This document shows positions 1-63,000 of a stretch of 64,000 nt of DNA, one piece after another. Position 1 is the stretch's first letter. Every line of letters starts with the position of its first letter. The notes under the pieces are model-generated. The model did no database searches, was not told the origin of the DNA, and saw only the letters and a list, made by a program, of their open reading frames with translations. Source of the DNA: Pavona decussata (Eukaryota); contig CDRNST010000196.1 in the NCBI GenBank assembly GCA_977016875.1, positions 2,914,001 to 2,978,000 of the forward strand, given 5' to 3'. The position numbers were made by a program, and so were the translations under genes.

Positions 1-3876
<3,876 letters not shown>

Positions 3877-5067
3877 AAAAAACTGTCCATTGTTACGTAA
3901 AGGATAGAAACCTTGTGAATTGTTTTGCAAAAATTACTGTTCGTTACTTTTGTGTAAGCTTGGTATTCAGTTTAGTTTTTCCCAGCGGTTTCCCTGCTTG
4001 TTATGTCAGTGGAAGTTTGAACTTGTAGAGATTCCTCTGAGTAAAAAGCATTTTCATAAAAATTTCTTAACTTTGTGCAGAGATCTTTTGTGTGTTGGGG
4101 GACCCAAGGGGGGGGGGGGGGGGGAGCAAATCAGGACAAAAGTGTGAACAAGCCTTGTCAGAAATTCAACATTGGCCCTGATCCAACACCTTTAAAAAAA
4201 TTAATGTTCCCCTTAAACTTCACCTCGCTTTTGGAAGAGGCTTGCTATTTTTTTTTTTGTTTTTGTTTTTTTTTTTTTTGTCAGGTTGTACTGACAAGAA
4301 CAAAACAAAAATGTAGGTGGAGGATACAGATCTTCCAAAACAAAATGTGACGTTAACTAGAAATAATATTGGCTTTAGAGGACAACTTTATGGTGTTGGG
4401 CAACTCTTCACAGACAGAAATGCATAGCTGATAGCAAATTTGAGAGTTAGCCAAGGTTCAAGGAAAGTAAAGAGCTATTGACATTTTAAAACTTACAAGT
4501 TTCACTAATAAAGTAGGAGCAACTAAAGTCTAACTACCTACTTCCTACTAAAGTAGGAGCCCCTAGAGAAAGAAGCCAGTTAAGTGTCTAGTTGCTTAGG
4601 AAAATAAACAAGTGATAATGTAGCATGAAATATTCAAGGAAGAGACGAGTGATTGTGTGAAGCTAGAGCATTTTTCTAGGATTGGAGCCAAGTTTGTGCA
4701 TCCAAAAAAGTACCATTTCAAGTTACTCTGGTGCCTTGCCTACACATGTGAAGGTAATCTCGGAAATTATGCACAAACGGCTTTGCTTTTATTGTCATCA
4801 ATCACGTATTTTGGAGTTCTGGGTCCTTTTCTCAAATTGAAAAACGCCTGATGACAACTCTGGAAACTGTGTTCACATTGTTTCTGGTCATCGATATTTC
4901 TTATGATTTGAAGCAACACGTTTGCATGTTTGAACAAAATGTTGAAATCAATCCACAAGACTCAGTTTGGCGAAAATTTTGGGACCCACAAAGTTGATAG
5001 AAACTGACTGCGGGGCCCTTGAAGGACTACGGGTGCTTATTAACGAAAACCAAGATAGGATGCTTAT

Positions 5068-5171
5068 GAGGCTCGATTACCAGCCGCTGCTTAGGAAAAT
5101 GAGCCTGCACTCATCCCCCCCGAAGGAGAGGATCAAAGACCAGACCCGGGAGACGGGGCAAATCGAGCCTA
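5068..5171. mobile_element. Short MITE (~104 bp) whose right end was the target of the large transposon
   Basis: TIR AGGCTCGATT (5069-5078) / AATCGAGCCT(A) (5161-5171). A degenerate 9-bp TSD (gatgcttat vs ggtgattat) appears once the large element is removed. Confidence 0.55.
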
Positions 5172-5175
5172 GGTG

Positions 5176-5476
5176 TATGGCGCGCCTTTCCAGTCAATAT
5201 TCAAACAAGCTTAATATACGATACATCCATTACATTTCTGTGCCATATTTTTTAATTCCTTTCTGTATATTTTTTATTTTGCTTCTATATTTTTAATATC
5301 TCTTCCTATTAATTTATATATACGTGTGTAGCTCATCTATTTTTTATTTTGTTCTCGTTATTTTATATGCGTTCTATATATTTTTTTATTTATTTCGTAT
5401 TTATTTTCGTTCCGAGCGGGATTTTTTATTTTCTTTCTAATTAGTATGCAACATGTGATCACATGACCGCGATGCA
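5176..5476 (+). repeat. Left terminal inverted repeat of the transposon
   Basis: Reverse complement of about 10870-11190. The first 33 bp are identical, with roughly a dozen substitutions further in. Confidence 0.95.
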
Positions 5477-5501
5477 TTTTCCCGCCAATTTCAAAAGCAA
5501 A

Positions 5502-7278
5502 ATGGCGGATGGAACTTTAAGAGATGGCAACGAGAGAGGCCTTTACAACTTCATAGAGTCTCTTCGTACCCTGTTGATTGGTATTCAGAATTTGAGCACA
5601 CAAGATGTCTCCGTTGATTACGTTGAACAAGCTAACTTGCGCCTGGAGGATGCAATTTTAACTTTACAGTTGCTATTGCATAGTGTATGGCAAAGTGAGG
5701 ACTCTGTCCTTCAAGATTTCAAGACAATAACAGAAGCTGTTTTGACAAAAGTACGCTTTGTTTTTCGTGTAATGACAAAGTATGAGGAAAGCAATTCCGT
5801 TGAAGCAACGGTATCAAATTCGTTCGCTTGTCCTACCACTAAACTAACAGGTGCAGGAAGACCAGTCATCGTCATCGAAAGAGAGCAGATCGAATTCTTA
5901 CGCGAACTGCATTTCCCCTGGGTGAAAATCGCTAGCTTGTTAGGTGTCAGTGAAAGTACTTTACGTCGAAGAAGACGGGAATTAAATTTGAATGATGACA
6001 GCGAAAACTGGACTGCATTGTCAGGTGCGTAGTAATTTACAGACTGAGGTTATCTATACTAGTAGCTTATTTGGTTTTAAGCTTATCGGTGTGTTTGGAT
6101 AAGGGTGTCTGCGAAGAAAGGGAGTTCAACATCGGAAACAAGATATAGTCTCCGGCAAAATAAATCTTAGAAGCCATACCCTTGGCCAAAGTATTTTAGG
6201 TTCCCCAAAATCCCATGTCACTCAATGATGTACGATACTTCAAACTTTGCAATTCAAATACAACTTCTTTTCAGATTCTCAGCTTGAAGACGCTGTCAAA
6301 GAAATTAGAAGTATTACTCCAAACATTGGACAACGAAGATTGCTTGGAGCTCTCCGAGCAAGGGGATTTCGAATCCAGCGATGGAGGGTTCGCAACTGTC
6401 TTCGTAGACAAGACCCACTTGGGACAGCACTTCGCTGGAGTACTCCGGTTTACCGTCGAAAGTACTCTGTACCAACGCCAAACGCTTTGTGGCACATAGA
6501 CGGTAACCACAAGCTTACCAGGTACAGGTTTGTTGTGCACTGCTGTGTTGATGGGTATTCGAGGGTTATTGTGTATGCCACCCTAACTGATAACAACCGA
6601 GCAGATACAGTGTTGGAGCTCTTCATCGAGGGAGTACAAGAGTTTGGCTTACCTTCAAGAGTAAGAAGCGATCATGGACTGGAAAATGTTGGAGTGGCAC
6701 AGTACATGTTGGAAAATAGAGGCCTGGACAGAGGAAGTATCATAACGGGAAGCTCTGTCCACAACTGCCGTGTTGAGCGCGCTCATAGAGATGTTTACGC
6801 TGGTGTCCTTTGTCACTTTGCCAATATCTTTAGTGGAATGGAAGACATGGGTCTTCTTGACCCGTTAAACGAAGTACATTTATTTTCATTGCACTTTGTC
6901 TACACACCAAGGATAAATAGGGCATTGCAACACTTTACTGATCAATGGAACAATCACCCCGTCTCCAGTGAACATCAATTATCTCCCCTACAAATTTTCG
7001 CCTCTGGGATTTTGGAGAACATGCACTCTGGATACTCTGGAGTTGAGAGTATTCTACATCCAAATCAAATTCCATTGTATGGGTTTGATCCAGATGGACC
7101 TTTCCCGTTAGACGACGACGATTACCAGGTCTCAATACCAGCAGTTGATGTTCAGCTCACACCACAACAACTGCATATTTTGGAAGTCTCCTGTCACCCT
7201 TTGAATGACGATGGTGAACATGGTAGAACTCAATATCTGAGATGCATAGACATCCTTAGAAATCAGTTCAACATATAA
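5502..7278 (+). CDS. DDE transposase, IS3/IS481-like integrase core; exons 5502-6024 and 6275-7278 (~508 aa)
   Basis: HTH (WVKIASLLGVSESTLRRRR), second HTH-like region (PNIGQRRLLGALRARG), and catalytic triad WHI-D-GNHKL / RS-D-HGLEN / NCRV-E-R. The phase-1 intron GTGCGT...TTTTCAG restores the frame (ALS-D-SQLE). No stops or frameshifts. Alternative upstream ATG at 5463. Confidence 0.92.
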
Positions 7279-8022
7279 GGAACTTTGCTGAGATAAGGCC
7301 GTTTTGGTGGTAACTATGTTTCAAAACAGGTGTTCCCAGCACCCCAGCATCCAACTAACCTGAAATCCGTTGTTTAGAGAGTGAAAAAGGGGCCTAGAGA
7401 ATTAAGATCAATTAACGCCTATCAAACTGGCACCACTAATTGTAAATCGATTAAAAACAAAGTCATGTTTTTTTATGAGCAATGATTGGCTGGGTAGCAT
7501 AATTCATTCTAAGAGTAAGGCATGGAACAAGAGGAAATTCTGATAGAAAGTCGTCAAGATAGTTCTTTTCTCTTGCTTCCCATTTACGGTTAATCGTAGA
7601 CTACCAACTTCGATGACAGATTGAAAACGTAAACAGTGTGAGATTTAATATTTTGCCTTCAAATTGTATCGATCAGAATAGAACACAACGAATGCAACTT
7701 AACCTTTACAACAGTTAGGAAAAAACTACATTAAAATCTCAACAATATAGTTATAAACAGCCACGCTCGCTTGAAAATGTCAACTTTGAACAGATTACAA
7801 GCTTGATACTACAATAAGGCATCAGCTAACGATTTTCCAGTATGTTGTACAGGAATCGATGCACAAATAATTTGTGCATTGTTGTTAAATGTTTTAAAAC
7901 TGTAAATACCCATTAAAGGCAGAAAACACAATTTATATATACATATATATATAAAATGAAATTATCAGTCTCTTCTAAATCAGCTTGCCACCATAATGGT
8001 CTTCATTTCTTCACAAGGCATA

Positions 8023-10834
8023 TTACACAATATCCATTTCCCAATAATCTGATGCAAGTATTGCACTGAACTCCTCTCTAAGTTCAGGAAATGACTGATA
8101 CGTTGAGGATAGCTCCAACACAGTATTACAGGTGTGGGCAATAGGTCGGCGACCTAAACCAGATAAGTTGGTAAAATTTACTTGGATTGCGTCAAAAAGC
8201 ATTAACTCTGAGCCACTGATAAACCTTACAAACTTTGATAATTTCTGAGGTGTGTCAAGGCCCTTAATATACCGTTTGAGAAACTTAAGGCTATCCCTTT
8301 CCCCATCACTCTCAGGGTTTGCCTCTAGGCAACTAAGGATTTTGCTCGTTGATGGTATTAACAATTCATACCTTTTGGAAAGTGCTGCAAAATCAGGAAA
8401 ACTAGGAAGGAGTGTGACAACTATATCCTTCCAGCACTCTGCAATATACTGTGGCTTCTGTAGTAGCTCCTTATGGGCTATTTCTTCAATAACTTGAATG
8501 ACATTATCAGAATTTACCATAATTCGACAGTCATAGTTACTAAGTATTTCTAAAAGCTGGGACATTTCATCTTCATCATCCCACTTCATATCACCAGCAA
8601 GGCACTTGTCAATCAAACATTTTTCATCTACTGAAATGTAATTTCTAAAGGATTGAGTCAGCATAGCGCTAGTTACAGCAGATTCCCCCCAAAAAAGACA
8701 GGCAAGGAACGTTTGAGACAGAAGGACTGGTAGGTATTGACAGGTTAAATATCCTTTCACCAAAATTCTACCTACAGCAACCCATTCCTCCCTTTGATAG
8801 TCATGTCTTACAAATGGTACACGCTCATTTTCTCCAACAAAAAGGGAATCATATGTTTCTTTCCAAAAAAGAGAGAAAACATCTCTAAGCAACCCAACAC
8901 CTCTGCCCATTTCTTCAACTCCCCTAGCATCAATAACGATTATCTCTATGTCTTGACTCATAATTAACGGATCTCGGAATACGTTAATCAAATCCTTCTT
9001 AATATTTAACCTGTGCACTTGGATGATACGTTTTGGTAGCAGTTGAGGTACAGGTACTAATACCGGTATAACATGCTCAGATGATGCATGAACAATATCA
9101 GAGTTACTGTCTAAAACAAGTGCATTTACTGGAACAGGTAGCTCAGATGATGCCAAAACAATATCAGAGTTACTGCCTGTCTCTACATCATTCAACTCTG
9201 TATTTTGATGTGATGTTTCTGCTTCAGTTGGAAATGGTACACAATAAGGTTGTGCAGCATCCTGGCAGGGGTGGGGCACCACAGCTGCATCTGGCCTCCC
9301 ATCACTCTCCCCAAATGAAAGCAACACAGGGCTTCTTTGTGCTCCACTAACACTAAAAGAAATATTAACTTGTCACAAACCATAAAAAAGTGATCTAAGT
9401 GGTAATGATGTGACATACTACGAAGTGTTCATATTTACATAAATATCCACAATCACATGGAGTTGCAATGTACCAAATCAATTTACTGATATCTAAGCAA
9501 ACAAACAAATAAATAAATACACAAATCTGTTTGGAGACAAACCGGATAATATTTCCAACAAAAAGCCATTTTCATGTCTAGTAGCATGAGCTGGGATGCC
9601 AGTCTATCATATACAACGTTATTCCACTGCATTGGGAAGCTACCACATAAAATTCACAAATACCTTTGTAGTAAGGCAAAAAAGCTAAAAGAAATCTATA
9701 CAGGTTTTATCTTGTTCAATGCAAAAATTCACTCGAAAAAGTTCACCTTGGACTGCTATCTAATACTGCATTCTCTAGCTCCTCTTCAGTTTCACCCTCA
9801 TCTTCAGATTCCAAAGGTATCTGTGATCTAACATAAACAGCTCCTTGACCGGCCATCCTGGTCACTCTTTCTGCATCCAGAGTTATGCCATCTGCCAACT
9901 TAGGAGTTATCAGCTTTCCATAGCATGGCTAGGTTGAGAAAAACACATATTACTTGCGGGCTTTTTGCAAAAGTTAAGGGTAATTTTGATGAAAGAGTAA
10001 TTAAGTTAAGCTTATGTCACAAGCAAGGGGAAATTATACAATAAATGAGGAGGTGGGAGCGGGGCAGTACCAGAGTAAGTCTGAATAACCCAACAACTTC
10101 TCCCAAAATTGTAAGTCCATTACGCGGGTCACTGCAGGTATCCTCTTGTGTGGGTAAATTGTTGGCAAAATAGTATAAATGCGTATTTATAAATAGTGCA
10201 GCCACAACAAATGCACAAACTGAACAGCAACGATGATAATATTATTGCGTTAAACGTAGAACAATGTTTAAGCTTATAACACAAGTGGAAAGTTACCCAC
10301 CTTGACATATTCAAATAGCAAAAGCTTTGGAAATCGATTCAGTATAGCAGCTTTAAGGGAATTTGCATCCCAGCTCTTGTCAAAGGGAAACTCGTGGCAG
10401 ACAAGTTCTCTCTCTTCTAACTGAAGTCGGCTTGTATGTGTAGGCACTTTGTTGATCTTGGGGCTGGGAATGAGGACTAGATCCTTGTAAACAAGTGTCT
10501 TGGATGGGCGGCCTTTGTTCGACTTAATGGTCTGCTTTAACCTTGCTGGTCTTCTACTAGTGCTTTTTCTACTAGCTCGGTTCGAGCCAACTGTCGGAAA
10601 GAGAGTGGCAAGACGAGCTTGAATAGAACTGCTTGAGGCTGGCGACGTCGAGGGTTCGTTCGACTGAAGTTCCTTGTTGTTCACCTGACGATCCCCGTTG
10701 TTCGGCTGACTGTCAGAGTTTACCGTTCCATTTATCCGAGGTAAAACATTTCTCGTAAATCCAGGTCTCAAATGACTTAAAATCTCTAAGGCATCCGCGG
10801 CCGCACGACAAGCAGTAGACAGTTCTTCCTCCAT
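8023..10834 (-). CDS. Transposon-encoded HECT-domain E3 ubiquitin ligase (G2E3-like); exons 10834-10301, 9928-9747 and 9352-8023 (~681 aa)
   Basis: C-terminal HECT-like domain: GRGVGLLRDVFSLFW, WVAVGRILVKGY, LSKFVRFISGS, RRPIAHT-C-NTVLELSSTYQSFPELREEF. Both GT-AG introns join in frame (EYVK/PCYG at phase 0; SP-S-VSG at phase 2). Exon 2 encodes MAGQGAVYVRSQ plus an acidic tract. Confidence 0.85.
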
Positions 10835-10869
10835 GTGACCGAAAGCCAAAATGGCGGAATGGAAAAAGT

Positions 10870-11190
10870 GCATCGCGGTCATGTGATCACGTGTTGCATA
10901 CTAATTAGAAAGAAAATAAAAAATCCCGCTCGGAACGAAAAAAAAATGCAGATTAAATATAAAATATATAGAACGCATATCAAATAACGAGAACAAAATA
11001 AAAAAATAGATGAGCTAAACACGTATATCTAAATTAATAGGAAGAGATATAAAAAATATAGAAGCAAAATGAAAAATAAAGAAGCAAAATAAAAAATATA
11101 CAGAAAGGAAATAAAAAATATGGCACAGAAATGTAATGGATGTATGGTATATTAAGGTTGTTTGAATATTGACTGGAAAGGCGCGCCATA
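10870..11190 (-). repeat. Right terminal inverted repeat of the transposon
   Basis: Reverse complement of 5176-5476, with an extra ~20-bp tandem duplication (gaagcaaaat...) at 11061-11100. Confidence 0.95.
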
Positions 11191-12829
11191 TAGGTGATTA
11201 TTAGATATGGTGAGTTAATGGATGGAGGGTACTAAATTGAATCATTACAGTGCTCCTTGTAGCTTTGCAACAGAAAACAGGAACTTGGCTATACTAGTAT
11301 TTCCCAGCTTGTATCAATCTCGTACCCAGATTCCTCAGGCTCTTTGGCCAGCGGTTGGTTGCCTGGAGAGAGACTGAGCTCCTGGATTTTTTCCGCCACA
11401 GAAATCTGCAGTAAAAAGGAAAGCTGTACCTTTGGTGCCAGACACTCTACTTGAGCAGTTTCCAAGTCCAGTTGACAATTAGCCTCTTGCCAATCCTGAG
11501 TCCTAGCGACATGCAAAAAAAAACATGACAGCCAATCAAAAAATTTATATTGTTGCTATTTCCAATGCAGAGTCCTAAGGACATGCTGTCAGGGACCTGT
11601 GAACTCTGGGTACAGGGCTGTGGATTCTACCATGATATTGTAAGATCACAACTCCCATCGCAAGTTTCGCAAAAACAGTGAATCTTGTTGCCAGGGTTCA
11701 CAGACAAAGCAAGACGATGCTCATTAACTAGGCTAGCTGACCCCCTAAAAGGATTGGTCAAAAGTATAGGGTGAGGTGGACTGGGTCAGAGATGGGGTGG
11801 GTTGTCAGTTTTTGAGTCCTTGGTAAGGGGTGGGTTGTTCAATTTTCAGCTACCCATTTGGGGTGGATCATCCTAATTTATAACAGGAATAGGCACACAT
11901 TTACCATAACATGATAAAATGAAAGAGAGAAAGAATGGAGACAACAGAAAGGGAGAGAAACTTGACCTATGAGGATGTGGAATGGGAGAACCTCCTGTGA
12001 GGATTTGCCAAGGAAGCAAAGAGTTTCTGTCCTTAATCTGTGTATCAAACATCTGACAACTGAAAAGAAATTAAGGAAAAAAAACCAAACTTGACTTGGT
12101 GTCAGCGCACACTCAGTTGTCAGCAGCCAAAGGCAGCCAAGTGGCTCTGAATCGAGTGTTGGCAGCTCAGAGGCAAGTGAAGACTGTGTTCTGCAGGAAG
12201 GTCGGAGCCGATACCTCCGATGATGACAAAATCCACCTTCCCAAACTTGCTTCCAACAGTTGGAGTGACAAATTATGATAATGATGTCCCATGAAGCGTA
12301 CTTTGCCAAACTTAATTCCTTATGAAGCAAGGCCAAAGGATGGAGGGTTATGATTTTTTCATACATAAAATGTGGTTTCCTTTTATTATGCAACCCAAAA
12401 ATGTAATTTTCAAACTTCATTTAGGGGTGGATCAGTCAGTTTTGTGCCAAAAGAAGGGGGTTAGGCCATGATTTTTCTTTTCTTTTTTTTTATCCACCAT
12501 ATTCCAAACTGCTCTGTTCCAACCCCTACTTTGATCAGTTCCTTTGCAATTGCGTTCAGTTTTCGTTGGCTAATTCATCCAGAGCCCTGGGGGCTACAAT
12601 TATGTTTTTGTAGGGGGGGGGGGGGGGGGTCATGAATTTTCAGTGGTAGGTTTTACAGAGGGTTATAGAAAAGTTCCCTGAAAGTATAACAAGGTGTAAG
12701 GGGGCCATCAGGAAAGTTAGGGGCCATCAAGAAAGTTTCTGTTAAAAGTGTTACGTTTTCATTATCAGTTAATATGTCACTTGTAATGAGAATAAAAGGT
12801 CTATATCAATAAATAATAAACTCACTTTG

Positions 12830-57015: not shown

Positions 57016-60000
57016 TCAGACGGGCTTGCTATCAGCTGGCGGAAGAGCTCCGTCAGGCAGTGATTTGTACACGTGGATTTTTATCACACGCACCATTCCT
57101 CTAGACTTAAGAAAGAGATATACAACGAAAGACATGGTTGCAATTACTATGATCAACAAAACCACCCCCAGAATAAAGTATATCGTCTCTAAAACGATGT
57201 TACGGGCGGCATCGACAAACCGTTTGGATCCTTGTTTTAGACCTTCGCGGTACGCTTCTCCGTCGTAGTCTTCAAACAATGTTCCTTCTAGCGTCGGTAT
57301 AACGCAAGTATCTATGTCAAAATTTAGAACTGATGCCGTCAATGCCTGGATTTCGTTCAAGCATCTACTCGCGTCTTCATCCAGAGAACACAGTTGTTGT
57401 CGAAGGCGTTCAATGCGTTCTTGTTGTTCTATGTTGAAGCTCACTATCATTGCGTTGTACTCGGATATGGTTTTATTCACGGTTTCCTTGTACAGTTGCA
57501 TTTCATTGTTGTTGATGAAGTCTACTTGGTCAGCAATGGCAAGGTTAGTGAAATTATAGTCAGTATCGAGTCGAGACGCCATTAAATCATAACCACCAAG
57601 TTCTTCAATAACTGTAACGTTCATTACATTGAACACCAAGACGATCAGCAAGTATACAACAGAAGCTGCAGCAGCGATTATTATACACATAGGAATAATA
57701 TTCGTACGCATTATCTTTTTATGAAGGGTCTTGCAAAATGTCAGAAACATCAAGAACCCTTTGGCAAGGTTGTCGAAGACCTGTCTAACAAGTCTCTCAG
57801 CTCTTTCTTTGGTGGTGGACGGTTTTTCTTGAAATTCGTCCTCATCATGTTCAACAATTTCTTCGGAACCTTGGATTAAGCTTAAAACAAACTGAAATGT
57901 TTTCGATCCTCGATAGATCAAGAGTAGAATATCGATAACGTACACCACGCCCAAAATGGCTTTTTTGACAGCAATAAAAACGTCGGCCTCATACAAACTA
58001 GTGGTATTTTTAATCTTCCCTTCTCTTTGTAGAAATTCTTTCTTCTGTTCGTCGATTTGTTCTTCCATGATGTCTCCCTCTTCAATGTTAAAGAAGGATC
58101 CTCCGCGAGCCGATTCGATCAGTGAAGACTTACTCGCTTGGGACGAGTTTGCAGTTCCGTTGAAACCATCACCTTGCTCAAACATAATTCGTTCAGAGAA
58201 ACCTGCTTTACTAAGGATGTAATCAAATGTAGAGCTATTGGCAGCGAAAAAATCACTGAAATTTCCCGGAATGCACGCGGCCTTACTTTTTGCCAACTCC
58301 TTGCCTTCTTTATTAATCTTTCGTATCCTTGGATTCATTTGTTCCTTTGCAGCTTTTAACATGAATCTCAAAGGACACATGAGTATCATTGTAAATGGGT
58401 GTTCAGGAGATTTGCCTGTCCTAAGGACTTCAGAAAAATCCGCCAAACCGTCCTTGGCGAATTGGACTTTGTGTTTAATATTATTCTCAATTTCGTTCAT
58501 TCTATATTTATCTACAACTCCAAGAAAGTCGAGAAATCCAATGAAGGAATTGTCACCTATACTGCGTTTTCCTCTGGTTGAAGTTGCATGCCAATGAAGT
58601 CCTTGTGAAATCTCATGATCAATGAGGTCTTGCTTTAGTAGTACATTGTGTTTATTCGCTGCTATTTCTCTCTTTTTCCTTCTAGATTTGCCTTCTAACT
58701 GATAGGCCCCTTTTGCTAAGAGAAACCACTTATTGTCGTAGACTCTCCTTCCATATTCAGTCAAATGATCTACAGTGTCTTGTAGTTTTCTTTTTGTGCG
58801 CGCTTCGAACTCTTTTATCCGTTTCTTGGTTGCTATTTTTAACTCTTCCACTTTTTTGGTCACCTTTTCGACAATTTTCTTACTTAACTTATTAAATATT
58901 TTTAATTGATTTTCTTGGATTATACAACTCATGTTGTATCTTAGCCACTGGAGCTGTATTCCTAGAAAAAAATCACAGGACCTTTGGATGTCTTCACTAG
59001 CATCAAGAACACGTTTGACTTCTCTTTCACGATGCTGATCCATTCGAGAAGCGATGGCATTGCTTTCATGGATTTTGCTTTGGACAAAATCTTGATATTC
59101 CTGGATTGTTTTCAGATTAGGTCCGTGAAGAATGGTCAGCATGGCAAACGCCATTGAGAATGTGAACACTAAGCTGTAGACGATTCTAACTACAACAAAA
59201 AATACAACCAATATAAGATGTCTTCTCTTGAGCCTGTTGTCATGTTTGGGTTGATTCTTGGTTTTCCCAGGTTTACATATCTTTGTGCTCTTACGTGTAA
59301 TAAATGTCCACCGTGAAGGTTTATTATTAACTACAGGCTTGTGGGTAACCTGTGCATATATCATAAGTCCAAACAAACACAGTAGCACACACCCAGTCAC
59401 CACAAACACAGGCATCAATGTTATCCACGGATTTGGGTTTTCATCGTCATATTTTTTCACTGGTTCTTTGGATTTTCTTGATCCTTTGTCAACTACAGCC
59501 AGCTGAAACTTCAGTTTTTGATTAGAATCCGATAAAAATACTCTAAACAAAACCTCTTTGGCTAAAAGATTCTTTCGGGGAACGTGTACTTCTACTTTGA
59601 AATTGGTCTCGGGACAAAGTATCACTACGTCTTGTTCGAGGACTATGTGATCGTCAATTTCGTCGATGACTTGAAGAGTGAAGAAACCAGGACAGCTTGT
59701 TAAAGTTCCAGATATCTTTATTTTCCAAGTGCTGTTCGCTTGCGATATACTACTTTGAAATGTTTCATCGTTACGGATGTTCGAGTTGGTTAGGACGTAC
59801 TTGAAAATTGATTCGTCCTTTGAAATACTTACGGTCATCATAGGTAGTTGTCGGGGGTCTTGTATACGATAGGAAATCCCGCCTCCTGCTTGCACGCCAA
59901 GATTTTCTACATTCGCACGCTGTAAATCATGGTAAGTATTCCGAAATGTCTTCGACCAATCAGAGAGCTTCCCACAGTTTTCACCCTTACTCCAAGATCT

Positions 60001-63000
60001 GGTAGTTATCAAAAATGGCGTTTTCGTTTGAATTTTAACCGTTTTTTTCCCAAACGCGTTACCCAATGTTGTGTTTCCTCCCACCAGATTTGATATGCTG
60101 TATTGATACGGGTCTTTGTTCGATATTCTTTGGGCCCGGAGATAAAGAAGAGAGGAGATATTAAAATTTGTTAAATGCACTACTTCAAGAGGCCCTAATC
60201 GAGTTTTTCCTCTTTGTATCTTCGTGAATGGATCGTCATCTTTCTGTGGAGCCCTTAAAGTTTCTGACTTCCATTGCGAGCTAAAGCGCCCAGTCTTATG
60301 CCGTACGTGGTACCTCAGTGTGTATAGCGTCTCTGGAGAATCGTATTTAAGAACACAGTTAAACTTTAATAACAAATTGCTTGATTTATTCATTGCCAAC
60401 GTAAACTGGCTGGTGTCCCCTTTAGCGCAATGCTTTGGTATCTGGGTGCAGTTTGCCAAATTGTAGAAAGGCTTACAATCAACAAGACAGTTTTTATAGC
60501 AGCAGGAACAGGAGCCGCTGATTTTCATATCGTTTGATTTATCACAATATGAACATGTATCCCTGCAAATGCGACACTTTTGATACGCTTCAGTACAGTT
60601 AACTGTCGGGAATGACTGCAACGGGTTGTCCACGAATTCGTACTCTTTTATACCAAATATGTCGGTAACAAAATTCGTGTAATTTGTGCAATAAAGTTTG
60701 CTTGAGTCTAGTTGGAGTTTCACAAAAGTCTTGTTGTTATTCTGAGCTGTTTCCTCCGCTGTGTTGCATTTGTCGTTTAAAGATCTGTAATAGTACGTTT
60801 CCCCTGGTGATACATCTCTTGGACAGAGATCACGTGACTGTTGATAACACGTGGCCGGGTAAACCTTTGTCTGACGATCTTGTTTTAACTCGTGGTTAAT
60901 AGTATAGTGGTTCGGAGCTGGGTATCGACAGTGCTTTCTGGTCACTTCCTGAAACCCGCGCACATGAACAAATTCGTGATTCTCGTTTGAGTTCCTTGCA
61001 TCGTAATCGTTATATTTTGGAACGAAGTTTACTTGTTCGACTTCCACGTCCATGAAAAAGCTTGAGTTTCGGAATAAACGACCGCGCCTTGGCGAATTCC
61101 CTTGCAGCTGAAAGGTTACGTTTGCGCCAGTTAACTGTAACCGATCTTCGAGAAGCACCAGGTCTCTTGCTAGGTTTCGGACGATGATCTTTGAACCTGA
61201 TCGAACTAATAGAAATAAAAGGAGATGAAAGATGGTTAATGACAAGCTTGGTAATCCAAGGAAGGGACTCCTTTTCGTTTAATCCATTAGCTATCCACAC
61301 TCACAAATTATGATGAACATGATTATATCTTAAAATTCCGTGTAAATAAACAACATTTGCTGTATCAAAGTGTTACCAACAACACCCATTGACATTGACA
61401 TTGACAAGGGACTAGCGCTATAGAAATAAATTATTATTTTCCTTGTTATTATTGGCACAGGCCCAGTGGCAAATGCGTTCTTTGCATAACGTCAAAGTTG
61501 AAACACTTAATAACCCTTTTGAGTAACTCATTTGAGATTTTCCCAAAAGTAGGTTAAACTGTGTCAACGCAATTTGAAGCCTTGGCATCTATGATGCACG
61601 ACAAATGGTTGTCATAGCCGATAGCCAGTATCTACCAAAACGTCTTTCATCTTTGAAGATGCACAAAAAATAAGATATAAAGCGTTTTCATTCGCGTGAC
61701 TACCGGCCATATTGGTTTACAGAAACAAAAGAAAGTATCGGCATAAAAATAGAGTTCAATACCCAGAGGTTTAGTTTGGGATACCAACATGGCCGCCATT
61801 TCTTTGTTTTGGGACACCAACATGGCCGCCGTGACGTCATTTGAAAACACTCGACCACTGTGACAATGACAAGACTTTGTTGCGAATCAAAGTTATCATG
61901 ATAGATTGATATTTTTTGTCCACTTTGATTATTATTTTAATTTAACATCGCTTGAACATTAAAATAGTGGCCACCTCTTCGCTAACAGCCACAAAAATCT
62001 ACAAAAATTGAAGAAAACGTTTTCCGTTTCTATAACTTTAAGCCAGATAAAGGTAAGTTTTTCCCACGTATAATTTTTATCTCCAACATGTAATTTGGAA
62101 TGTAAATCCTCCAATTTGTAACTGTCGACTACAGATTCCTCAGTTTCTCCCGAATTCTCTGAAAGACTTACAATCAGCTTGACGCCTCAATGTTTCACCT
62201 TCCTTCGCTTGAAGGTAGGTTTCAAGTCAGATACTTACCCTCAAGAAAATCACTATCATTGGTGTCCTTGCTTAGAGTCAAGGGTTTGGAAATATCTGCA
62301 ATATAAAAGAGTGAAAAGAAGACCGCATGTTTTTCACTTATCTAGCAGAGACGATTCGGGATGAGCAGATACCAGAGAAATACATGAGTAAAACAGCGTT
62401 TTGATTTTAAATCATACGTTGACGGGCTGGGAAAAAAATCTTTCTACTCAGTTGTTTGCCTTGAGAAATCAAGAAGAATGATGACTTTCAAATACTAGGA
62501 GAGAAAGAAGGTGGACAAAAGACAGACGAACTTCTTACCGACGCATTTTCTGTCAAATGTTAATCCGCAACCATGCACTTGGTATGCCATCCCATCACAT
62601 GAAGAACTGCAAGCTGCGAGCAGAGCGAAAGAATACAAGTTTAATTTAGGCTTTAACGGTAAGAATACTACTTAATGTTAGGAAAAAGTTTTTCGCCGCA
62701 CATGCAAATTAAACTCAACCCCTGAACAAACGCCCATTAAACAGCCACCTCTTTAATCGCATGTACTAAGTATAAATGAGTGGAGAGCAGGTCGAACCGA
62801 GTTTGCCACTGGGAAAATGAAACCATTTTCGATTTGCCAAATTCAAGTTCCCGTTTGCCTTGCTGGAAGAATTTGATTTCTAGCAACAAAGGGAATCTTA
62901 TTAACTTAACTCAAACTTCAGTACTTTATGAAGTTTACCAACACGGCCGCACTGTGTTGGTTTGATATGGATGCTGTTCTCAGGATGAAAAATCTCGCAT

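Follow-up and report, generated by a model that had tools for sequence, protein, structure and literature searches.

A recently mobile IS3EU/GingerRoot-type transposon of the coral Pavona decussata with a probable gene of its own for a HECT-domain protein

Descriptions of DNA transposons generally come down to a transposase and the ends of the element, and few of their superfamilies have been studied as little as IS3EU. Repbase has included IS3EU since 2012-2013, and its 17 autonomous families there include those of zebrafish, Hydra and an acorn worm (PMC10045372, PMC11934779). GingerRoot was described in 2019 (PMC6839031), and a 2025 paper called the structure and function of IS3EU largely unexplored. 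Fungal IS3EU elements carry an accessory enzyme that has been proposed to counter host silencing (PMC12730594). Here we analyse a 64,000-nucleotide stretch of the Pavona decussata genome (assembly GCA_977016875.1, contig CDRNST010000196.1, positions 2,914,001 to 2,978,000), called the window below, in which positions 5176-11190 hold an element with two convergent genes. We consider it probable (roughly 80%) that this element is an intact, recently mobile, autonomous IS3EU/GingerRoot DNA transposon whose second gene, referred to as the ligase gene, is a conserved element gene for a HECT protein.

The element is 6,015 bp long and has IS3EU/GingerRoot-type termini (TATGG..CCATA). Its terminal inverted repeats (TIRs) of about 305 bp pair in two blocks, 5176-5319 with 11047-11190 at 90% and 5340-5480 with 10865-11005 at 91%, and TAGGTG is found on both flanks. 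The perfect boundaries claimed in a preliminary description of this DNA are thus all present. A search of the Pavona decussata assembly itself (602 Mb, 1,180 contigs) brought the number of full-length copies to five. The four others share 98-99% identity with the one in the window and are separated from it by 25-48 substitutions per 6 kb (0.4-0.8%). Each of the five is flanked by its own perfect 6-bp duplication, and these are all different (TAGGTG, AACTAG, CAAAAC, GGCGCG and AAGTTC). A chance origin of the boundaries is excluded because five copies that are 98-100% identical carry five different perfect duplications. The family is young and has moved repeatedly. Both genes are undisrupted in three of the five full-length copies (the window copy, C31 and C157), the ligase gene contains stops in two of the five, and the substitutions among copies are mainly non-synonymous; copies decay neutrally once inserted. 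The same assembly also holds a copy split by an insertion of about 4.5 kb (C189), together with decayed fragments. A derivative on C314 (138943-142424; L007/L011) has an internal deletion that joins element positions 1-2075 to 4504-5990. With the HECT exon and the last part of the transposase missing, it is a candidate for a non-autonomous copy.

The two genes converge, each beginning just inside one TIR (Table 1). The first encodes a transposase of 508 amino acids, the size expected from the preliminary description, and its second exon matches Pfam rve (2e-6) in addition to rva_4. The complete DDE triad is formed by D250 (codon 6499-6501), D307 (6670-6672) and E342 (6775-6777), and the triad columns are almost invariant across 37 relatives. 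Upstream of the DDE core, a Pfam search detected a helix-turn-helix alone, as weak matches near the end of exon 1 (residues 146-179 of the open reading frame (ORF) counted from 5463), and no HHCC zinc finger. Relatives of the transposase number 2,083 at E ≤ 1e-10 and include octocorals, Acropora, Stylophora, Clytia and an acorn worm; the coral, Clytia and acorn-worm relatives match the host range reported for IS3EU. Two ATGs that lie inside the TIRs, at 5463 and 10882, from which both ORFs would begin MTAMHF, were rejected as starts; these six codons are all that the two genes have in common there, and they are probably not translated. The inner ATGs at 5502 and 10834 are the likely starts because other copies have a +1 insertion or a 14-nucleotide (nt) deletion at 10872 that breaks the outer frame.

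The ligase gene encodes a protein of 681 amino acids, in agreement with the earlier prediction of a product of about this size with a HECT-like end and a PxAHTC cysteine; the motif reads PIAHTC and its cysteine is Cys647 (codon 8128-8130). Contigs of four public sequencing runs were compared with window positions 5400-10900. Spliced forms were present in runs X1 and X2, which derive from one sample of the same organism, and all three introns of the two genes are spliced out in their contigs, at the joints given in Table 1. One 2.8-kb contig covers the entire spliced ligase messenger RNA, from 10898, inside the right TIR, to 7673. The two undisrupted, spliced, convergent genes of the preliminary description are confirmed. 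An extra exon of 72 nt at 10142-10071 was dropped, since the transcript contigs join 10301 straight to 9928. Contigs of the two genes approach or overlap each other around 7670-7730, where contigs cannot show the true transcript ends; overlapping 3' ends, if real, could yield double-stranded RNA.

Searches, folds and the dN/dS analysis were computed exon by exon. The second protein consists of a basic stretch, which is probably nuclear-targeting, followed by a ubiquitin-like domain, a fast-evolving, acidic disordered linker and the HECT domain. In an AlphaFold2 model of exon 3 built from 38 sequences, residues 1-100 are disordered and residues 101-442 have a predicted local distance difference test score (pLDDT) above 90. 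When this model was compared with the PDB by Foldseek, HECT domains took all of the top 50 places, with alignments of about 380 columns and E values down to 1.2e-10 (HUWE1 first); they include HUWE1, UBR5, Rsp5, NEDD4, Smurf, WWP, AREL1, Tom1 and TRIP12, at 13-17% identity. The predicted fold of the exon 3 domain is clearly that of a HECT domain despite the weak Pfam score of the window protein itself, which falls below the cut-off. Every sequence of alignments A1 (38 sequences) and A2 (27 sequences) has the catalytic cysteine (Cys408 of exon 3), and the P, A, H and T of the motif are nearly invariant. The distance of Cys647 from the C-terminus, 34 residues, is canonical for HECT domains (about 32-36). 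A match to Pfam HECT (E ≤ 0.01) was found for 28 of 38 relatives, the best at 8.9e-10, and the Pfam cut-off is passed by two paralogous copies, L050 with 26.5 bits and L051 with 28.8 bits. At the sequence level, the HECT exon gave no match to PDB chains, and a profile version gave marginal matches to the C-lobe only.

No Pfam family matched exon 1, exon 2 or the N-terminal regions of the relatives, and a region search with residues 1-300 of P0027 returned one further protein only. The N-terminal domain was modelled from L051, a single-exon paralogue in the same genome that is about 45-50% identical in this domain, and the core of the model has a pLDDT of about 90. It matches only ubiquitin-like beta-grasp folds, namely ubiquilin, SUMO, the ubiquitin-like domains of USP7, BAG6, UBX, talin F0 and the ubiquitin-like domain of TBK1, with Foldseek E values of about 0.05-0.17 and VIA-align Z scores of 5.7-7.0 across all 50 rows. 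The model gives moderate support to a ubiquitin-like beta-grasp assignment. The acidic linker (window 9052-9351, minus strand) contains an imperfect tandem duplication (SNSDIV..), and in-frame indels of 3, 12 and 30 nt occur in it among the copies and related transcripts.

Selection was assessed against the related element at L034. Synonymous divergence (dS) is 0.25-0.33 and is the same in all five exons, and no stops were found. The ratio of non-synonymous to synonymous differences (pN/pS) is 0.25 and 0.14 for the transposase. In the ligase gene, exon 1 has a value of 0.37, exon 2 of 0.31, the HECT domain of 0.23 (Fisher p = 1.7e-16) and the linker of 0.75, which is not significant. Coding indels among the copies and related coral transcripts are all multiples of three, whereas the non-coding ones are not. 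These patterns indicate that the HECT domain and the transposase are under purifying selection. At equal dS, protein identity is 78% for the ligase versus 92% for the transposase.

The linkage of the two genes recurs in other genomes. A convergent rva_4 transposase lies just downstream of the HECT gene in five of the six relatives whose genomic context was examined. The octocoral Dendronephthya gigantea has an element of 6.6 kb with TIRs of about 280 bp, the termini TATGACGCGC, the duplication GTATTT and a convergent pair inside. In two further assemblies, a convergent pair at L033 is enclosed by the inverted ends TACGATGG and the duplication TTAAAG, and the related element at L034 (4905-12443) combines a convergent pair with ends identical to those of the window element and the duplication GGGGTT. 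The co-occurrence of both genes within TIRs and 6-bp duplications, which the preliminary description had proposed as a check, thus holds for these three, and the genes are adjacent in two further hosts. In Hydractinia symbiolongicarpus an ORF for the transposase, which is not annotated, stands side by side with the HECT gene. In Astyanax mexicanus three loci (L035-L037) that are 99% identical over more than 25 kb begin with TACGGAGCCCC (left end TACGG) and carry a HECT gene of 753 amino acids, with an rva_4 gene annotated at two of the three. L031, L033 and L034 each have a 6-bp duplication of their own. The Astyanax element is more than 25 kb long and has an intron-rich HECT gene of 14 kb and internal inverted duplications, and its right end lies beyond the flank examined. 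The element at L034 (1-17491) stands among Polinton/Maverick-like genes (a Pox_A32-type packaging ATPase, an rve integrase and an Endonuclease_7-like gene), apparently as nested mobile elements.

Other IS3EU families of the Pavona genome are built in the same way. The nearest transposases in this genome (52-57% identity; C39 and eight copies of the C110 type) also have a convergent second gene, which encodes the same N-terminal domain and the above-cut-off HECT matches reported for L050 (C39) and L051 (C110). A tblastn search with the window HECT misses the HECT genes of C39 and C110, so that a locus without a hit may still have such a gene. In this genome a convergent transposase is located 2-9 kb away from at least 12 HECT hits, a count that leaves aside about 14 weaker ones. 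At 15 further loci the N-terminal domain has a transposase 4-9 kb away, in convergent orientation every time, and two HECT copies that are 63% identical (C8 and C72) are adjoined by decayed transposases. When the transposase and HECT trees were compared, they were concordant for five of the six elements; the exception is the C39 family, with its HECT on a very long branch. L050 (C39:1126500-1136499) has a single-exon transposase of 548 amino acids at 494-2140 (plus strand), 56% identical in the core, and a single-exon second protein of 630 amino acids at 3296-5188 (minus strand) that keeps the ubiquitin-like N-terminal domain; its long HECT branch suggests that the HECT was either replaced or is extremely fast-evolving. 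L051 (C110:719500-729499) and C27, C102, C143, C144, C161, C233 and C415 make up eight copies that are 100% identical over the 161-residue N-terminal domain, and this IS3EU-plus-HECT family may be younger than that of the window.

Of 1.84 billion cluster representatives, 3,667 match a profile of the HECT domain at E ≤ 0.001, and 826 still do so at E ≤ 1e-30. Members with a name include proteins of the starfish Patiria, of Astyanax, which has at least eight loci in one 90% cluster, and of Salminus. The N-terminal module of the main cnidarian type is common to the fish and starfish proteins, and those of fish add what by eye resembles a SAM domain. The PHD_G2E3 and zf-HC5HC2H fingers, both of which are carried by true G2E3 clusters, are absent from the second protein. 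By its domain content the second protein is not a G2E3 orthologue, and the resemblance is confined to the HECT part: the HECT of G2E3 is among the nearer structural or feature neighbours, and the Atlas clusters named 'G2E3-like' share this part only. The shared HECT part is probably the reason that pipelines label some relatives 'G2E3-like'. The earlier suggestion that many G2E3-like expansions in corals and fish are transposon genes is borne out here for Astyanax and the cnidarians only.

The ligase gene had been put forward as a dedicated element gene and not chance cargo, and this is supported, because its linkage to the transposase recurs in other genomes, it is under purifying selection at a dS equal to that of the transposase, other IS3EU families have a homologous second gene, and the trees are concordant. 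Several points weigh against an element with a conserved gene for a ubiquitin ligase. With 17.7 bits, the window protein stays below the gathering cut-off of Pfam HECT (PF00632), which is 23.9, and the ubiquitin-like assignment comes from a model of only eight paralogue sequences with middling Z scores. Expression rests on one sample whose RNA label was guessed, and the RNA nature of the runs is argued by the spliced joints only. The HECT domain of G2E3 has been reported as non-catalytic. Ligase activity (thioester, E2 binding and substrate), nuclear location and target are inferred, and a conserved N-terminal domain with a variable HECT would also fit a constant partner such as the transposase. 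Lastly, L054 (10001-12154) holds an intact solo HECT-family gene of 717 amino acids with no transposase or TIRs within 10 kb, so the protein family can live outside elements. The 90% cluster of L054 has members on several large contigs, and it may be a domesticated or a stranded copy. Solo L054, and the capture of host genes or fragments by DNA transposons such as GingerRoot (PMC6839031) and the fungal elements with TET genes (PMC12730594), lend something to the view that the ligase is a host gene captured once by the window family and without a role in the element. This view is nevertheless highly improbable and already largely refuted: the same ordered pair occurs in Scleractinia, Octocorallia, Hydrozoa, a teleost and several IS3EU families of the Pavona genome, the gene is selected and as diverged in dS as the transposase, and none of 143 relatives was conspicuous as a single-copy host orthologue.

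In the reading that we favour, the transposase makes the 6-bp staggered cut in the target DNA, and the second protein would enter the nucleus, receive ubiquitin from a host E2 as a thioester on Cys647 and hand it on to a target held by its N-terminal part, which would help the element to spread. That target could be a host factor that limits transposition, for example in chromatin silencing or DNA-damage signalling; we favour this option at somewhat less than even odds, because the ligase evolves faster than the transposase, because the HECT and the N-terminal add-ons vary between lineages, and because enzymes with comparable functions are found in viruses and in fungal IS3EU elements (TET, PMC12730594). 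In the closest transposase family (56% identity), the HECT is too diverged to be aligned with that of the window element. The ligase might instead ubiquitinate the transposase or the post-integration complex of the element itself, and so either keep its dose low or clear it from DNA for host repair of the 6-bp gaps, as ClpX acts on MuA; this is less likely but a serious rival. It would suit the strict gene-for-gene linkage, the equal dS of the two genes, the trees that agree for most elements and a ubiquitin-like domain kept across IS3EU families while the HECT differs greatly, but it fits poorly with a ligase that evolves faster than the transposase and a HECT that turns over between families. 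A HECT-like domain that is no enzyme, only a scaffold for binding or localisation with a structural cysteine, is more doubtful still. The low identity to canonical HECT domains, the sub-cut-off Pfam score, the HECT of G2E3 reported as non-catalytic and the presence of G2E3-like proteins among the nearest named Atlas clusters speak for such a scaffold; the PIAHTC motif, (nearly) invariant in 27-38 relatives and at the canonical distance from the C-terminus, the complete two-lobed fold predicted at high confidence and the purifying selection on the domain speak for an enzyme. Whether the link between HECT and IS3EU is new is a separate matter, on which the biology does not depend. A literature search, which did not cover Repbase entries, found none that pairs HECT with IS3EU among 62 papers naming IS3EU, the IS481EU, GingerRoot and fungal TET papers being silent on it. 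Repbase has listed IS3EU families since 2012-2013 and its curators usually list every ORF, and a prior record there, which would remove the novelty alone, is unlikely but a real prospect.

A conserved, selected and expressed E3 gene would give a cut-and-paste element a concrete, testable route to manipulate the host ubiquitin system. Many viruses manipulate this system, and virus-encoded E3 ligases offer a parallel. We propose, tentatively and with the odds against it, that an animal-wide branch of IS3EU/GingerRoot has a ubiquitin-like-plus-HECT ligase as a core gene, a factor for counter-defence or host manipulation that would mark silencing or DNA-repair proteins for degradation. If this is true, it would be the first known case of an E3 ligase that belongs to the standard gene set of a DNA transposon, and hundreds to thousands of 'HECT domain-containing' or 'G2E3-like' gene models in cnidarian, echinoderm and fish genomes would be transposon genes. 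For annotation, many of the representatives retrieved by the HECT profile are multi-copy coral and fish genes that are now listed as ordinary host proteins. The young copies in which both genes are open could be used for functional work.

The features of the element are collected in Table 1. Outside it, the window contains a long Hsp70-like open frame at 2356-3876 (plus strand), which matches positions 156-599 of the Pfam HSP70 profile strongly (2e-184) and is separated from the downstream element by about 1.3 kb, and an uninterrupted open frame of 1,409 amino acids at 57016-61245 (minus strand), without a Pfam match, that has a Cys-rich N-terminal part and hydrophobic stretches resembling membrane spans.

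Table 1. Features of the transposon, in window coordinates; UTR, untranslated region. Joints are given as the last and first retained positions.
Feature	Position	Strand	Evidence and remarks
Left target-site duplication, TAGGTG	5170-5175	.	Same hexamer at 11191-11196; other copies with other hexamers
Left TIR, begins TATGGCGCGCC	5176-5480	+	Inverted-repeat pairs I1 and I2, 90-91% complementary; A/T-rich direct subrepeats; inner end precedes transposase gene
Transposase exon 1 (N-terminal region, helix-turn-helix)	5502-6024	+	Open frame, ATG 5502; joint 6024/6275 in run X2
Transposase intron, 250 nt, GT..AG, phase 1	6025-6274	+	Spliced contig of run X2
Transposase exon 2, rva_4/rve DDE core	6275-7278	+	Pfam PF24764 rva_4, 1.2e-78; stop 7276-7278
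Spacer between convergent genes, both 3' UTRs	7279-8022	.	Transcript contigs enter from both sides; indels among copies not multiples of three
Ligase exon 3	8023-9352	-	Acidic disordered linker (first ~100 residues), then predicted HECT domain 8026-9051; stop 8023-8025
Ligase intron 2	9353-9746	-	Joint 9352/9747, CT..AC on plus strand, runs X1 and X2
Ligase exon 2	9747-9928	-	Second half of putative ubiquitin-like domain 9821-9928, alignable with the modelled domain; start of acidic linker; spliced contigs
Ligase intron 1	9929-10300	-	Joint 9928/10301, CT..AC on plus strand, runs X1 and X2
Ligase exon 1	10301-10834	-	ATG 10834; basic stretch 10499-10570; first half of putative ubiquitin-like domain 10301-10501; open frame
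Right TIR, ends GGCGCGCCATA	10865-11190	-	Inverted-repeat pairs; ligase transcript contig of run X2 extends to 10898
Right target-site duplication, TAGGTG	11191-11196	.	Matches left hexamer

Compared with described systems, the element shares with IS3EU/GingerRoot (PMC6839031; Kojima 2023, PMC10045372) the 6-bp duplication, TA..TA termini, long inverted ends, an integrase-like DDE transposase of the IS3/IS481-related lineage with an N-terminal helix-turn-helix and no HHCC finger, and hosts that include corals, sea anemones and fish. Its TATGG..CCATA ends also fit the TAYGG..CCRTA termini of fungal IS3EU (PMC12730594). The published descriptions consulted name the transposase only, whereas here there is a second conserved gene, for a predicted ubiquitin-like-plus-HECT protein. 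The fungal IS3EU elements with an alpha-kinase or a TET/JBP dioxygenase (Kojima 2025, PMC12730594) come closest, as they belong to the same superfamily, have the same kind of termini and carry a second gene opposite to the transposase. The enzymes differ, kinase or dioxygenase there and HECT here, and while the TET genes move passively between superfamilies, the HECT gene looks stably linked to IS3EU across animal phyla. With canonical HECT ligases (HUWE1, NEDD4/Rsp5, UBR5 and E6AP) the second protein shares the full two-lobed fold, as predicted, and a P-x-A-H-T-C motif about 34 residues from the C-terminus. It differs from them in its 13-17% identity, in lacking WW, C2, RLD or other known substrate-binding modules, in its putative N-terminal ubiquitin-like domain and in being multi-copy and transposon-encoded. 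Enzymes of the ubiquitin and SUMO systems are carried by other DNA transposons, as ULP1-like proteases in MULE, CACTA and Zisupton and as OTU-like proteases in some Helitrons. Those enzymes remove a modification, whereas the ligase of the window element would attach one.

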